NCBI RefSeq assembly: GCF_000143415.4 | Contig: NW_003314323.1 | Span: 187,208 to 251,207, forward strand | From: Selaginella moellendorffii | Taxonomy: Eukaryota > Plantae > Lycopodiophyta | Length of the DNA: 64,000 bases | Direction of reading: 5' to 3' | In this document: positions 35,163 to 62,586 of the stretch, piece after piece | How the letters are laid out: each line of letters begins with the position of its first letter | Position numbering within the stretch: position 1 is the stretch's first letter | Made by a program: the position numbers and the translations under genes | Notes under the pieces: generated by a model | The model's database searches: none | Seen by the model: the letters and a program-made list of their open reading frames with translations, nothing else | Told to the model about the DNA's origin: nothing

Positions 35163-35949
35163 TCAGCCAGCGATGAGAGCGTACAATGACAATTCCAGAG
35201 ATTCCCTGGCCAAGTGCCTGATGTCCAGTGCCTGGATAGAGAAAATGAAGTGAAGAAGAACCAAAAAGGAAACTCCAGAGAATAGAAGAAAGATCTAGAT
35301 TTCTTATACCTTGCTGCGAATGCAAAGACTAGCCATGGCTGGACGGTTCTTGGATCCCGATCCCGGCGCCGATAATTCTCCCCGATCGATCGAGATGGTC
35401 GCGTCCTGGACGAGCAGCTGGTGCTGCCGCAAGATCCACAGCACGCTCAGCAGCAAGCCCTGGCGCATACTGCAGCTCATGCTCAAGAACACGTCGGATT
35501 CGCAGATGTGGAGCCCCACGGGGCCGCCGCCACGATCCATCGCCGGCAGCGAGGAGCTTGCGATCATCAAATTCCTTGACTTACAGCGGCGTCGATCCTC
35601 GAGCACGGATTTCCTGAGCGCCAGCTCCTGGATTTGGCGCTGCAGTGACTGGATCAGCGCCATTGCCTCGGCGATGACCTCGCATCGATCCATCTGTACA
35701 GCAAAGAAGCAAGCAAAGCATTTAGCCCTTTGTTTGATCTTGGCTGAGAATCCTAGCGATCGATCGAATGTGATGGATGCAGCGAGAGATTACTACCTTC
35801 CAGGATTGCGATTGGAGCGGTAGCAGCACGCGCAGTCGATCATACAGCTCCTGTACCTCCTTCCGCCGCTCGCGCTCCGACCAGATGTGATTGATCCGCT
35901 GCATGTAACTCCGGCTCCGCCCTCCCTGCGCCGGGATTAGATGATCCAT
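35163..35949 (-). CDS. bHLH transcription factor with C-terminal ACT-like domain, copy 1 (3 exons)
   Basis: QRINHIWSERERRKEVQELYDRLRVLLP...WK|MDRCEVIAEAMALIQSLQRQIQEL. The basic region resembles ZHOUPI-type HIWTERERRK. The ACT-like part is VFLSMSC...GLLLSVLWILRQHQLLVQDATIS, and the last exon reads ALDIRHLARESLELSLYALIAG*. Confidence 0.85.
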
Positions 35950-36158
35950 GGCCGCGATCCTCCTCCTCTCGCGCGAAGTTTTCGAAATCTTTTGGAATAG
36001 TCAAGCACCAAAGGAATTATAAATATTCCGAACTTTCTTTCCAGGGAATCACACCGTACGCGCGGTGTTTATGATCTGTATAGAAGCCCAGACTCGTGGT
36101 ACGATGCTTGCAATGCCCGTGAACGCCTGGGCGAAGTCCGTGGATCATGCCTTGGCTT

Positions 36159-36919
36159 CTACCTCATGAAGCACTGCCAGACGACGCAGCCAAGATCGCC
36201 ATCCATCAAAGGGCTTTGACCGTGTGATTGTAGCGATGCTGATGATCCAGCACTAGACGTCGCCGTTGGAGACGAGGCTGATTCTTCTGCTGGATTGCCT
36301 TGGAGGAGGTGAGTATCATGAAACTCTTCTCCTGCGGGGTCTGGAATCTCCGGCGTGGGAGGAGATGGAGGTGGGTCGCTTCTTTCATGATCTTGAGAAA
36401 CGGGTGAGTGGGCTACAAGTGCCTTGTTCCTGATGCGCGAGTTCCACTGGTTCTTCACATCGTTGTCTGTTCTTCCGGGAAGCTGGGAAGCAATGTAAGC
36501 CCACCTGTGATTGATATCAGTGATGAGGATAAAAACGTGATGGTGCCGGATCAAACACCTGTTTCCAACAAGCCCATGGAGCTCGATGAGCTTTTGATTC
36601 TCCTCGTCGCTGAATTTCCCACGTTTAAGGTCCGGTCTCAAGTAGTTCATCCACCTTAGTCTACAGCTCTTCCCACTTCTTTGGAGCCCTGCAAGAAAGC
36701 AGCGAAATCGGTCCTATAGAAAACTGAGTGAGTGAGATCGTCAATCAAACCCGCAAGCTTGGGAACAGTGGTCCATACGTTTCCACACCCGTGCTGCAGT
36801 ATGAAATTCAGCAATAGCTCGTCCTCTTCTGGCGACCACAGTCCCTTCCTCACGATCGAGCTCGAGCTCGTCGCGCCTCCCAATTCATGATCGTCGGGTT
36901 GTTCTCTTCTCGAGACCAT
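36159..36919 (-). CDS. R2R3-MYB transcription factor, copy 1 (3 exons)
   Basis: [13 protein letters not shown]...WTTVPKLAG|[26 protein letters not shown]...GNR|[21 protein letters not shown], with the canonical R2R3 intron positions. Confidence 0.92.
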
Positions 36920-37774
36920 GTATCGGTGAAGAACTTTGTGACGAGGATTTCAAAGAAGATGAATTCATTTCAAGCTTGCTCTTTTGGTCATGGATCAAAC
37001 TCATGGAAGGACAATATCAGTTGACACACATTTCTCACATTCCAACCACCAAACACAAAAACACGGTAATGTTTTCAATTTTTTTTCTTCTGTCTTCTTC
37101 TTTTTGTCTCAGCTTCATATTAAGAATCTGACAATAACTTTATTTTCTACTGTCCCAAGGTACAAAGCTTGAAAGTCCTTTCCGCAAGCTGGCCCTTTGA
37201 CAGAGATTGCAAGATTGAGGCCAATGTTTTAGATCTATAGTTCTGAGTACAGTGTTTCACCTTTTTTAATACCTTAAGATGAAATTACTATATAAAAATA
37301 AATTCTAAAAATCCAGTTTCTAAAATCTTTTTTGTGACAGAGAAATGATAAAAGAAATGCATTATGTCAAGTAACACATATTGGATTATAACTCATGCTT
37401 GAAAAAATTCACTTCAAAATATATACCATCTTAGCAGTATATGTCAAAACAATTAATATGCATCACAGAATGTTTTTCTTAGAAGAAAATCGAAATAATT
37501 TTAGTATTTTCTTTTGGAATTTTTTTAACCAAGAATAGCATCATGTTTAGGTTCAGGTTTAGTAAATCAAGGAACGTTTAGGTTCAGGTTTAGGGGGTTT
37601 TAGCGGTTACTCAAATCAAATTGGGGATGAGTATAAGTATATTCTAGGCATCAAAAATCACCTGAGACAAGGAAATGGATTTTTTGATAAAAGGGAGAAG
37701 ATGTGGAAATAGTGGTCATAGCAGCAAAGTATGGATATAGTTGCCTCCAATTTTCATGCTTGAACTTCACATCA

Positions 37775-38160
37775 TATATATGCATCATACACACACACAC
37801 ACACATATATATACATACATATATATATACATATATATATATACATACATATATATATATACATACATATATATATATACATACATATATATATACATAC
37901 ATACATACATATACATACATATATACATATACATACATACATACATATACATACATATATACATACATATATACATATATATATATATATATACATATAT
38001 ATATATATATATATATATACATATATATATATATATATATATACATATATATATATATATATACATATATATATATATATATACATATATATATATATAT
38101 ACATATATATATATATATATATATATGTATATATATATATGTGTGTATACATATGTATAT
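37775..38160. repeat. Compound (TA)n/(TACA)n microsatellite
   Basis: Seen directly in the sequence. Confidence 0.97.
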
Positions 38161-59950: not shown

Positions 59951-60402
59951 GGTAATGAAGAATCTCAAGATGAGGCATAGCATAGTTTGGGAAGACTAAA
60001 TTGTGCTAGATCATAACACTCCTCCCTTTGGCCTTGAATCTGACATGGGAGTTCCAATGGTTCTTGACATTGTTGTCCATTCTCCCAGGAAGTTGAGTAG
60101 CAAAGTAAGCCCACCTACACAGTGAAGGGAGAGATGTCGATCTGAAGCCAAAGACTCAAGCAAAGTAAAGTACCTGTTTCCAACCAATTCATGCAGTTGA
60201 CAGAGAGTTTCCTCCTCCTGCTCGCTGAATTTTCCGTGCCTCAACTCTGGTCTCATCCATCTCAGCCTGCAACTCTTGCCAGTTCTCTGTTCTAAGCTCT
60301 CGAAAATAAAAGACAAAACAGCAATCCCAATCTCCTGTGACAGTGGAATTAATAAAAACTTGGGCATGCTCATGGTCGGTTGATAGATCAGCTAGTGATG
60401 AG

Positions 60403-60849
60403 CATACTTGCATTTGAACGGGTACGATTAATAAAAAATGCCGTTTAAAACGTGTGTATAATATGGCGTTTAAAACGGTGTTTAAACACCAAGAATATTT
60501 TTGAAAAACCCTAAAGAATATGCTTTCTTTTACTTAGGATTAGGGTTCATGTAAAATCAGGGTTGGTGGGATCCAGAAGCGCTAAAGTAAGTCTGGGATG
60601 GGGGGAGGAAGGCAGCCATGCTGAAGCTAGGGTCATGTTCTGAAACTGAGGCCGACATCCGAAATAAGCCACAGCGTGAATCCATGGAAGTGTAAGTATT
60701 GCTCAAATTTTGTTTAGTAACAGTTAAGTATTTTTTAATTATATTAAAACTGAAAACCATTATACCCGTTCGAAAAAAAGCTAAACAGGTATTAAACATT
60801 CAATACCCATTTGAATCCGGTTGCGTTTGAATGTTCGGATGCAAGTATG
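60403..60849. mobile_element. Non-autonomous hAT-type MITE (447 bp) in the last exon of bHLH copy 3
   Basis: TIRs CATACTTGCATTTGAAC / CATACTTGCATCCGAAC and an 8-bp TSD GTGATGAG/GTGACGAG. The empty site is present in copy 1 at ~35170. Confidence 0.88.
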
Positions 60850-61616
60850 GTGACGAGAGTGTAAAGTGACAATTTCAAAGATTCCCTGGCCAAATGCCTG
60901 ATGTCCAGTGCCTGGATAGAGAAAATGAAGAGAAGAAGAACCAAAAAGGAAACTCAAGAAAAATCTAGATTTCTTATACCTTGCTGCGAATGCAAAGGCT
61001 AGCCATGGCTGGACGGTTCTTGGATCCCGGTCCTCGCGCCGATAATTCTCCCCGATCGATCGAGATGGTCGCGTCCTGGATGAGCAGCTGGTGCTGCCGC
61101 AAGATCCACAGCACGCTCAGCAGCAATCCCTCGCACATACTGCAGCTCATGCTCAAGAACTCGAATTCACAGATGTGGAGCCCCACGGGACCGCCACCAC
61201 GATCCATCACCGGCAACGAGGAGCTTGCGATCATCAAATTCCTTGACTTACAGCGGCGTTGATCCTCGAGCACGGATTTCCTGAGCGCCAGCTCCTGGAT
61301 TTGGCGCTGCAGTGACTGGATCAGCGCCATTGCCTTGGCGATGACCTCGCATTGATCCATCTGTACAGCAAAGAAGCAAGCAAAGCATTTAGCCCTTTGT
61401 TTGTTCTTGGCTGAGAATCCTAGCGATCGATCGAATGTGATGGATGGAGCGAGAGATTACTACCTTCCAGGATTGCGATTGGAGCGGTAGCAGCACGCGC
61501 AGTCGATCATACAGCTCCTGGACCTCCTTCCGCCGCTCGCGCTCCGACCAGATGTGATTGATCCGCTGCATGTAACTCCGGCTCCGCCCTCCCTGCGCCG
61601 GGATTAGATGATCCAT
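60792..61616 (-). CDS. bHLH-ACT transcription factor, copy 3 (C-terminus supplied by the MITE)
   Basis: Near-identical to copy 1. The last exon reads ALDIRHLARESLKLSLYTLVT and then ILASEHSNATGFKWVLNV* inside the MITE. Confidence 0.8.
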
Positions 61617-61825
61617 GGCCGCGATCCTCCTCCTCTCGCACGAAGTCTTCGAAATCTTTTGGAATAGTCAAGCACCAAAGGAATTATAAATATTCCGAAC
61701 TTTCTTTCCAGGGAATCACACCGTACGCGCGGTGTTTATGATCTGTATAGAAGCCCAGACTCGTGGTACGATGCTTGCAATGCCCGTGAACGCCTGGGCG
61801 AAGTCCGTGGATCATGCCTTGGCTT

Positions 61826-62586
61826 CTACCTCATGAAGCACTGCCAGACAACGCAGCCAAGATCGCCATCCATCAAAGGGCTTTGACCGTGTGATTGTAG
61901 CGATGCTGATGATCCAGCACTAGACGTCGCCGCTGGAGACGAGGCTGATTCTTCTGCTGGATTGCCTTGGAGGAGGTGAGTATCATGAAACTCTTCTCCT
62001 GCGGGGTCTGGAATCTCCGGCGTGGGAGGAGATGGAGGTGGGTCGCTTCTTTCATGATCTTGAGAAACGGGTGAGTGGGCTACAAATGCCTTGTTCCTGA
62101 TGCGCGAGTTCCACTGGTTCTTCACATCGTTGTCTGTTCTTCCGGGAAGCTGGGAAGCAATGTAAGCCCACCTGTGATTGATATCAGTGATGAGGATAAA
62201 AACGTGATGGTGCCGGATCAAACACCTGTTTCCAACAAGCCCATGGAGCTCGATGAGCTTTTGATTCTCCTCGTCGCTGAATTTCCCACGTTTTAGGTCC
62301 GGCCTCAAGTAGTTCATCCACCTTAGCCTACAGCTCTTCCCACTTCTTTGGAGCCCTGCAAGAAAGCAGCGAAATCGGTCCTATAGAAAACTGAGTGAGT
62401 GAGATCGTCAATCAAACCCGCAAGCTTGGGAACAGTGGTCCATACGTTTCCACACCCGTGCTGCAGTATGAAATTCAGCAATAGCTCGTCCTCTTCTGGT
62501 GACCACAGTCCCTTCCTCACGATCGAGCTCGAGCTCGTCGCGCCTCCCAATTCATGATCATCGGGTTGTTCTCTTCTCGAGACCAT
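61826..62586 (-). CDS. R2R3-MYB transcription factor, copy 3
   Basis: Near-identical to 36159-36919, with the same exon structure. Confidence 0.92.

Follow-up and report, generated by a model that had tools for sequence, protein, structure and literature searches.

A tandem array of adjacent R2R3-MYB and bHLH genes in Selaginella moellendorffii and its probable origin by unit duplication

Organization of the array

The stretch of DNA analyzed here, referred to throughout as the window, comprises 64,000 nucleotides (nt) of the lycophyte Selaginella moellendorffii (NCBI RefSeq assembly GCF_000143415.4, contig NW_003314323.1, positions 187,208 to 251,207 of the forward strand; coordinates below are counted from its first letter). 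It contains an array of two-gene cassettes in which an R2R3-MYB gene, or what is left of one, is followed by a gene for a short basic helix-loop-helix (bHLH) protein with a predicted ACT-like domain at its C-terminus, and every MYB and bHLH of the array is carried on the minus strand. The original prediction saw a MYB directly upstream of a same-strand bHLH three times. Two such cassettes, numbered 1 and 3, are indeed intact, but the MYB of the middle cassette is a pseudogene. The gene models of the array have canonical (GT..AG) splice sites. Window exons were searched singly, with the database proteins P0001-P0003 and P0082 serving as stand-ins for the full-length products, and coding sequences joined from the window were used to calculate Ka/Ks, the ratio of nonsynonymous (Ka) to synonymous (Ks) divergence. 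Comparison of the window with the syntenic parts of both haplotype scaffolds of GCA_000143415.2 (GL377585.1 and GL377627.1) gave 96-97% identity, and it is identical to neither.

Cassettes 1 and 3 are of the same type, which we call A. In cassette 1, MYB1 (214 amino acids [aa]; 36919-36159, exons 36919-36751, 36688-36559 and 36504-36159) is separated by a spacer of 209 bp (35950-36158) from bHLH1 (201 aa; 35949-35163, exons 35949-35797, 35693-35310 and 35231-35163). In cassette 3, MYB3 (214 aa; 61826-62586, exons 62586-62418, 62355-62226 and 62171-61826) and bHLH3 (217 aa; 60792-61616, exons 61616-61464, 61360-60980 and 60911-60792) flank a spacer, again of 209 bp (61617-61825), with two mismatches relative to that of cassette 1. 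Both MYB genes have three exons, and their introns of 62 and 54 nt, with GT..AG ends, follow ...PKLAG and ...GNR at conserved positions inside R2 and R3. The 214-aa model is the same call that NCBI made in the reference, where the match is XP_024533701 ('MYB61-like', 214 aa). MYB3 was mapped by alignment from copy 1; its open reading frame (ORF) is intact, with 99% amino acid identity to MYB1 and a Ka/Ks of 0.09. Searched with its second exon, bHLH1 is 98% identical to XP_024533491 ('bHLH36-like', 201 aa).

Copies 1 and 3 form one 2.9-kb duplication (35172-38070 versus 60852-63710) with 94.5% nucleotide identity, which includes a shared upstream region (36920-38070, equivalent to 62587-63710) at 94.9%. 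They had been described as near-identical, but with the MYB proteins at 99% and the bHLH proteins at 92% identity they are better called similar. Compared with bHLH1, the ACT-like domain of bHLH3 lacks one residue and carries several replacements, and the C-terminus of the protein is altered and extended. An insertion of ∼455 bp in the last exon of bHLH3 (60397-60851; 455 gap columns against copy 1) creates the new C-terminus and stop, and is absent at the equivalent place in reference locus L009. The Ka/Ks of bHLH3 versus bHLH1 is 0.39, and its derived changes are also found in a truncated, unannotated reference copy (L002:15429-16153).

Identity between the two type-A cassettes is not uniform. 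A patch of ∼1.2 kb reaching from MYB exon 1 to bHLH intron 1 (35694-36919 versus 61361-62586) is 99% identical, as opposed to ∼95% in the upstream region and bHLH exon 2 (Fisher p = 3e-10). Because the introns and the spacer within the patch are as alike as the exons, while the flanks are only 95% identical, the patch looks like the product of recent gene conversion rather than of constraint. Blocks of periodic 8-12-bp repeats that match one another in both orientations border each type-A cassette on its upstream side (37668-38250 and 63401-63710) and also occur downstream of the middle bHLH (53658-53810). These blocks may have been substrates for the rearrangements that distinguish the haplotypes.

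An intact bHLH and a dead MYB in the middle cassette

The middle cassette was predicted to be strongly diverged in both of its genes. For the bHLH this is correct: bHLH2' (228 aa; 55902-55089, exons 55902-55645, 55569-55213 and 55160-55089) is intact, matches the Pfam HLH family and, below the cut-off, the ACT-like family, and has 54% amino acid identity to bHLH1 (Ks 1.3, Ka/Ks 0.30). It is 95% identical to a bHLH of a second cassette type in the reference, which we call bHLH-B (Ks 0.066, Ka/Ks 0.32). The MYB is another matter. What appears to be a MYB 301 bp upstream of bHLH2' (56650-56204) is only a frameshifted, C-terminal pseudogene remnant, and the gap of ∼300 bp predicted for this cassette alongside the two gaps of 209 bp runs from the end of a pseudo-ORF to the bHLH2' ATG. 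When aligned to exon 3 of the MYB-B gene in L002, the remnant (56204-56666, with ORFs in two frames) has a 5-bp deletion, a 21-bp deletion and an 11-bp insertion, and retains the motif MMDGxLxCIVW. Its stop is lost, and the frame therefore runs into a (GA)n microsatellite. A coding remnant of the front part, consisting of the second half of R2, intron 2 and R3 (60030-60283), lies 4 kb further upstream. It carries a 9-bp deletion in R2 that removes the conserved residues NYL, and a stop just after R3. MYB-B exon 1 was not found anywhere in the window.

The two pieces of this gene, ΔMYB2', are severed by a degenerate retroelement of the long terminal repeat (LTR) type (56667-60018, 3,352 bp), which lies inside exon 3 and whose insertion made the stop after R3. 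The element has TG..CA ends, a 5-bp target-site duplication (AGGAG) and a reverse-transcriptase ORF on the plus strand (57278-57748; RVT_1 at 5e-15), and its LTRs are so degenerate that a 39-nt terminal direct repeat is all that was detected. The insertion is common to the window and the corresponding reference cassette, and the intact reference MYB-B reads straight through the site. We considered whether the MYB of copy 2 could be an intact gene with a large intron, and rejected this given that the insertion lies within exon 3, with a target-site duplication, and that exon 1 is missing. The MYB of this cassette in the window is a pseudogene.

Array order and the recent tandem duplication

Both reference haplotypes contain an intact type-B cassette, with a MYB of 260/261 aa, a spacer of 431/444 bp and a bHLH of 228 aa, directly after an FHA gene and a methyltransferase gene. 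Because an intact copy of the diverged type is kept in both haplotypes, we distinguish two old cassette types, A and B, with Ks values of about 1.2-1.9 between them for both genes. In the reference, type B is followed by a type-A cassette, then the ΔMYB-B' junction with the retroelement, bHLH-B', and a further type-A cassette that corresponds to window copy 1. The array order is B–A–ΔB'–A', and in the window copy 3 is A, copy 2 is ΔB' and copy 1 is A'.

At ∼60283 the window preserves a chimeric junction (60280-60396 in a four-way alignment). On its left is the ∼113 bp that follows the bHLH-A stop (equivalent to 35050-35162), and on its right the sequence begins at about nt 8 of MYB-B exon 2, with an AGA microhomology at the join. 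The same junction is found in the reference (L004:5356-5518 and L009:14695 onwards), and therefore in three haplotype versions in total. The junction therefore marks one tandem duplication of the segment [ΔMYB-B … bHLH-B … MYB-A … bHLH-A + 113 bp]. The paralog pairs that it produced have Ks values of 0.043 (MYB1/MYB3), 0.098 (bHLH1/bHLH3) and 0.066 (bHLH-B'/bHLH-B), the first being low because of the conversion patch. Both hallmarks of a tandem segmental duplication are thus present at the locus, a chimeric end-to-start junction and paralog pairs of equal age on both sides of it.

The truncated reference copy of bHLH-A at L002:15429-16153 lies beside an intact MYB, and the NCBI annotation includes five MYB-A proteins and two bHLH-A proteins. 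The NCBI model P0083 (232 aa, L004:10001-15375) appears to be mis-built: residues 1-136 correspond to bHLH-B' exons 2-3, the exon encoding the bHLH is left out, and the rest of the model is unrelated sequence reached over a distance of more than 5 kb that includes assembly gaps. On GL377585.1 (L002:12957-13660), ∼650 bp of sequence directly downstream of bHLH-B is followed by its own inverted copy, a palindromic arrangement that is absent in that form from the window.

Age and origin of the pairing

The original prediction held that the linkage predates the recent duplication, and this is borne out. Between types A and B, Ks is 1.1-1.3 for the bHLH (Ka/Ks 0.30-0.33) and ranges from 1.3 (R2R3 only) to 1.9 for the MYB (Ka/Ks 0.11-0.21). 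A maximum-likelihood tree joins bHLH-A and bHLH-B with 100/100 support, on a stem of 2.1, and places this clade as sister (85/79) to an unlinked S. moellendorffii gene encoding P0084 (XP_024528414, 'ORG3-like', 344 aa). In a tree of the 80 nearest database MYBs, MYB-A and MYB-B are likewise sisters (support 0.993) on a stem of 0.88. The two gene trees agree with co-duplication and, because MYB and bHLH alike have A and B versions that are sister paralogs with Ks above 1, the pairing is older than the recent duplication. The MYB+bHLH unit has undergone block duplication at least twice.

To see how far back the adjacency extends, we looked at the relatives of the short bHLH. A HMMER search of 1.84 billion cluster representatives returned bHLH-B (E = 5e-49), the mis-modeled bHLH-B' and P0084 (E = 5e-20), and no short-bHLH orthologue outside S. 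moellendorffii above the level of generic bHLH matches. Word-based searches added none, which is weak evidence, since one of them missed even P0001 and P0082 among the 8000 candidates listed. The loci of the four nearest bHLH relatives were then checked, namely P0084 and P0106 of S. moellendorffii, MpBHLH24 of Marchantia and P0086 of Physcomitrium. Within 10 kb of these four genes no MYB is annotated and no unannotated MYB was detected by tblastn. An ancient land-plant linkage is rejected on this basis. Therefore, the two genes became neighbors within the lycophyte lineage, once the line of the short bHLH had diverged from that of P0084. Our literature search turned up neither MYB-bHLH adjacency nor MpBHLH24 nor the cassette genes.

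The encoded proteins

The MYB is of the R2R3 kind, with PF00249 matching twice (P0002 at 109 bits and P0003 at 112 bits, two stretches each), and the window exons match as well. As predicted, it lacks the motif through which such proteins contact bHLH factors: the regular expression [DE]Lx2[RK]x3Lx6Lx3R is absent from MYB1, MYB3 and the reference MYB-A and MYB-B, in a fetched set that held no positive control, and four of the six motif positions differ in the cassette MYBs. Outside R2R3 the only conserved element is a C-terminal motif shared by MYB-A and MYB-B, MMDGDLGC[VI]VWQ, which among 251 fetched proteins is limited to these two.

The bHLH domain (PF00010) scores 34 bits against a cut-off of 20.7, and its basic region has His, Glu and Arg at positions 5, 9 and 13. 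Because the stretch ahead of the basic-region His is just 20 residues long in type A and 56 in type B, the protein has no N-terminal MYB-interaction region, again as predicted; it has lost a long N-terminal region that its nearest paralog, P0084, and the bryophyte relatives keep. With both the contact motif and the interaction region absent, the pair lacks the domain features of a classical MYB-bHLH-WD40 (MBW) complex, as the original prediction had noted. At the C-terminus, the Pfam ACT-like family PF22754 falls below its cut-off in the cassette bHLHs (20.7-24.2 versus 27.6 bits). However, the AlphaFold model of bHLH-A (mean predicted local distance difference test score [pLDDT] 83.2) has, in addition to the two bHLH helices, a C-terminal beta-beta-alpha-beta-beta-alpha domain (strands 110-126, helix 131-141, strands 144-180, helix 188-200). 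The top Foldseek matches of this domain are maize R (9c7o) and GL3 (9c7n), with a template modeling (TM) score of 0.82 on the target and an E value of 1e-4. The predicted C-terminus is therefore an ACT-like fold.

The nearest named seed-plant relatives of the bHLH are 'bHLH95-like', which agrees with the earlier description of its basic region as ZHOUPI-like, and the bryophyte relatives include MpBHLH24 and a Physcomitrium protein. In the family classification, bHLH95 is ZHOUPI (ZOU), of subfamily Ib(1) (PMC2839125). The deeper nodes toward seed-plant ZOU are supported at 74/68 only, in a set that did not include AtbHLH95. With its H-E-R basic region, the cassette bHLH resembles the ZOU-related, Ib(1)-like group. 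Each of the cassette proteins is probably an ordinary DNA-binding factor.

Unit duplication or selected partnership

With the genes modeled, the duplications reconstructed and ΔMYB-B' shown to be a pseudogene, we regard the array as probably the outcome of ordinary segmental duplication, within the Selaginella lineage, of a unit of two neighboring transcription factor genes that are modeled separately. Cassette types A and B go back to an old duplication of the MYB+bHLH unit (Ks at least 1.2). Recently (∼5% divergence, Ks 0.04-0.10), a tandem duplication copied the segment bounded by the start of MYB-B exon 2 and a point 113 bp beyond the bHLH-A stop, and this was followed by partial homogenization through gene conversion, transposon hits and gene-by-gene decay. 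The adjacency has probably persisted because spacers a few hundred bases long travel with the genes on either side and are a small target for rearrangement, and not due to operon-like expression. Co-inheritance of the two genes is a trivial result of unit duplication.

Several points weigh against this account. Separate transcription of MYB and bHLH rests on NCBI gene models and one TATA-like element; the MYB tree sample includes no other lycophyte MYBs; and S. moellendorffii is the sole lycophyte covered by the adjacency survey. Furthermore, both genes of both cassette types have been under purifying selection since their split at Ks above 1, and the stems of both gene lineages are unusually long. 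A working pair under selection would also show this pattern of retention and long stems, although passive co-duplication of two useful neighbors would give it equally.

The working pair could take the form of a selected partner module. The MYB and the short bHLH would then be dedicated heteromeric partners outside the MBW scheme, or one of the two would directly regulate the other, and linkage and co-duplication would be favored for keeping the pair matched in dosage and expression. Such a module could involve docking of MMDGDLGC[VI]VWQ on the bHLH or on the ACT-like domain, with the MYB possibly supplying the functions of the lost bHLH N-terminus. In its favor are the purifying selection on both genes in both old cassette types, the stems of 2.1 (bHLH) and 0.88 (MYB), the confinement of the sole conserved MYB element outside R2R3 to the two cassette MYBs, and the loss from the bHLH of an N-terminal region that P0084 and the bryophyte relatives keep. 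However, the MYB lacks the known bHLH-contact motif, and the partner known for ZOU, the characterized relative, is another bHLH, ICE1, rather than a MYB. Recent copies drop one member of the pair and keep the other, bHLH2' remains constrained (Ka/Ks 0.32) beside a dead MYB, and the spacer is not conserved. In addition, a single chance adjacency is not improbable in a genome with about 100 bHLH genes (PMC2839125), and duplication then multiplies it. On balance we consider a selected module unlikely. A more specific version, less likely again, is a non-MBW MYB-bHLH partnership of the Selaginella lineage in which an N-terminally shortened ZOU-type bHLH came to depend on the adjacent MYB, for example via contact of MMDGDLGC[VI]VWQ with the bHLH or its ACT-like domain, and selection for matched dosage and a common chromatin context kept the two genes within a few hundred bases of each other through an old duplication.

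Spacers and transcription

The original prediction interpreted the cassettes as a co-regulated, operon-like module. In such a scheme a dicistronic transcript would start from the MYB promoter, or splicing would fuse the MYB to the bHLH. The two genes are on the same strand with just 209 bp from stop to ATG, and the MYB stop sits in a GT context (AG|GTAG) that is a potential splice donor. However, gaps between unrelated same-strand neighbors in the fetched loci of this genome are 124, 126, 151, 341, 526, 796 and 876 bp, and 209 bp is therefore ordinary for the compact genome of S. moellendorffii. MYB-bHLH spacers vary in length (209, 301, 431 and 444 bp), and the local alignment score of type A versus type B spacers equals the mean of shuffled sequences, so that a conserved regulatory block in the spacer is rejected. 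The unusually short, conserved spacer of an operon is thus not what is found here: at 209-444 bp the spacers are unalike between A and B, and gaps of 124-151 bp lie nearby. The type-B spacer (301-444 bp) contains a (GA)n microsatellite and AATAAA. A TATA-like TATTTATAA at 36025-36017, 68 nt before the bHLH1 ATG, is weak evidence for separate transcription, and NCBI models MYB and bHLH as separate genes in both haplotypes.

A fused or read-through protein fares no better. The single donor-acceptor pairing tried by hand, from the GT at the MYB1 stop to an acceptor ahead of the bHLH1 ATG, shifts the frame and soon runs into a stop. No database protein among the relatives combines Myb and HLH domains, and the 150-residue N-terminal extension of P0084 contains no Myb domain. 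The two members also decay independently, as in ΔB' the MYB is dead beside a constrained bHLH (Ka/Ks 0.32), and elsewhere bHLH-A is truncated and the MYB is intact. Given an ordinary gap, an unconserved spacer, separate gene models, independent loss and bHLH relatives with no MYB neighbor, the operon-like interpretation is not supported, and we judge operon-like or read-through expression to be very improbable.

Equally improbable is that the whole array is debris, made of young lineage-specific duplicates heading for loss with no role for any cassette: transposon insertions, a multi-hit MYB pseudogene, a truncated reference bHLH, structural haplotype differences and the lack of database entries earlier than 2018 (see below) all fit, but Ka/Ks stays at 0.09-0.33 whether the timescale is short or long, MYB1, MYB3, bHLH1, bHLH2' and the reference B cassette have intact ORFs and splice sites, and the bHLH-A model is confident.

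Neighboring features

Between cassettes 2 and 1 lies a 9.97-kb insertion (41102-51067). GL377585.1 lacks it and has the flanks 51068 and 41101 next to each other. The terminal direct repeats of the insertion (1.66 kb, 92% identical) each contain internal tandem repeats of ∼12 bp, and the insertion carries a 687-aa hAT-type transposase ORF on the plus strand (46202-48265) with DUF659 and hAT dimerization domains. Elsewhere in the window, a pentatricopeptide repeat (PPR) gene is duplicated in tandem (17607-19867 and 22090-24584, ∼93% identical). The second copy has an intact 535-aa ORF on the minus strand (22820-24427) and the first is broken into short ORFs, and additional PPR similarity links 19919-20650 with 30478-31298. 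On the plus strand, a TMEM254-domain ORF (34538-34885) is convergent with bHLH1, with ∼275 bp between its end and the bHLH1 stop. The reference has this ORF within a 483-aa model that also has epimerase/3-beta-HSD matches and is possibly a merged gene model.

The cassette proteins themselves are represented only by RefSeq XP accessions from 2018, and there are no EFJ or SELMODRAFT entries in their 90% clusters. Therefore, they are probably missing from the surveys of bHLH and MYB families that were based on the first annotation.

Significance and comparison with known systems

As it stands, the locus is a clean, datable unit duplication of two neighbor genes in a compact lycophyte genome, in which a preserved breakpoint, apparent gene conversion, transposon hits and gene-by-gene decay can be seen together. 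The annotation is also corrected, as the copy-2 MYB is a pseudogene, P0083 looks mis-built and one reference bHLH-A copy is unannotated. Should the two proteins interact, MYB-bHLH cooperation would have arisen here independently, with its partners linked in cis, which would bear on the origin of combinatorial transcription factor modules; were the partnership a dedicated one, plants would offer a case of partner transcription factors kept together in cis.

The obvious comparison is with the MBW partners, an R2R3-MYB bearing the R3 motif and a bHLH of subgroup IIIf such as maize R or Arabidopsis GL3 and TT8. Like these, the cassettes combine an R2R3-MYB with a bHLH ending in an ACT-like domain, and the predicted C-terminal fold of bHLH-A matches the ACT-like crystal structures of R and GL3. 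However, the cassette MYB lacks [DE]Lx2[RK]x3Lx6Lx3R, and its bHLH neighbor, which belongs to another subfamily, has 20 or 56 residues before the basic region in place of a MYB-interaction region of ∼200 residues. The MBW genes are not known to be linked. With ZHOUPI/RGE1 (AtbHLH95) of Ib(1), the cassette bHLHs share the HIWSER-RRK signature of the basic region as well as a C-terminal domain that is conserved, and their nearest named matches are 'bHLH95-like'. They differ in being a fast-evolving, N-terminally shortened Selaginella offshoot, sister to XP_024528414 and weakly placed relative to seed-plant ZOU (74/68). No adjacent MYB is described for ZOU, whose known partner is the bHLH ICE1.

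Two further systems resemble the array in how it is built. The bHLH cluster of Catharanthus BIS1/2/3 is likewise a physical cluster of regulators formed by local duplication (PMC7833464), but a single family is repeated there, whereas the Selaginella unit consists of two. Closer in form are the troponin I and troponin T pairs of vertebrates, a two-gene unit that was duplicated as a block to leave paralogs side by side (PMC9825255). The troponins are proven subunits of one complex, whereas the Selaginella MYB and bHLH are not known to interact. The array itself belongs to a known kind, the tandem segmental duplication of neighboring genes.

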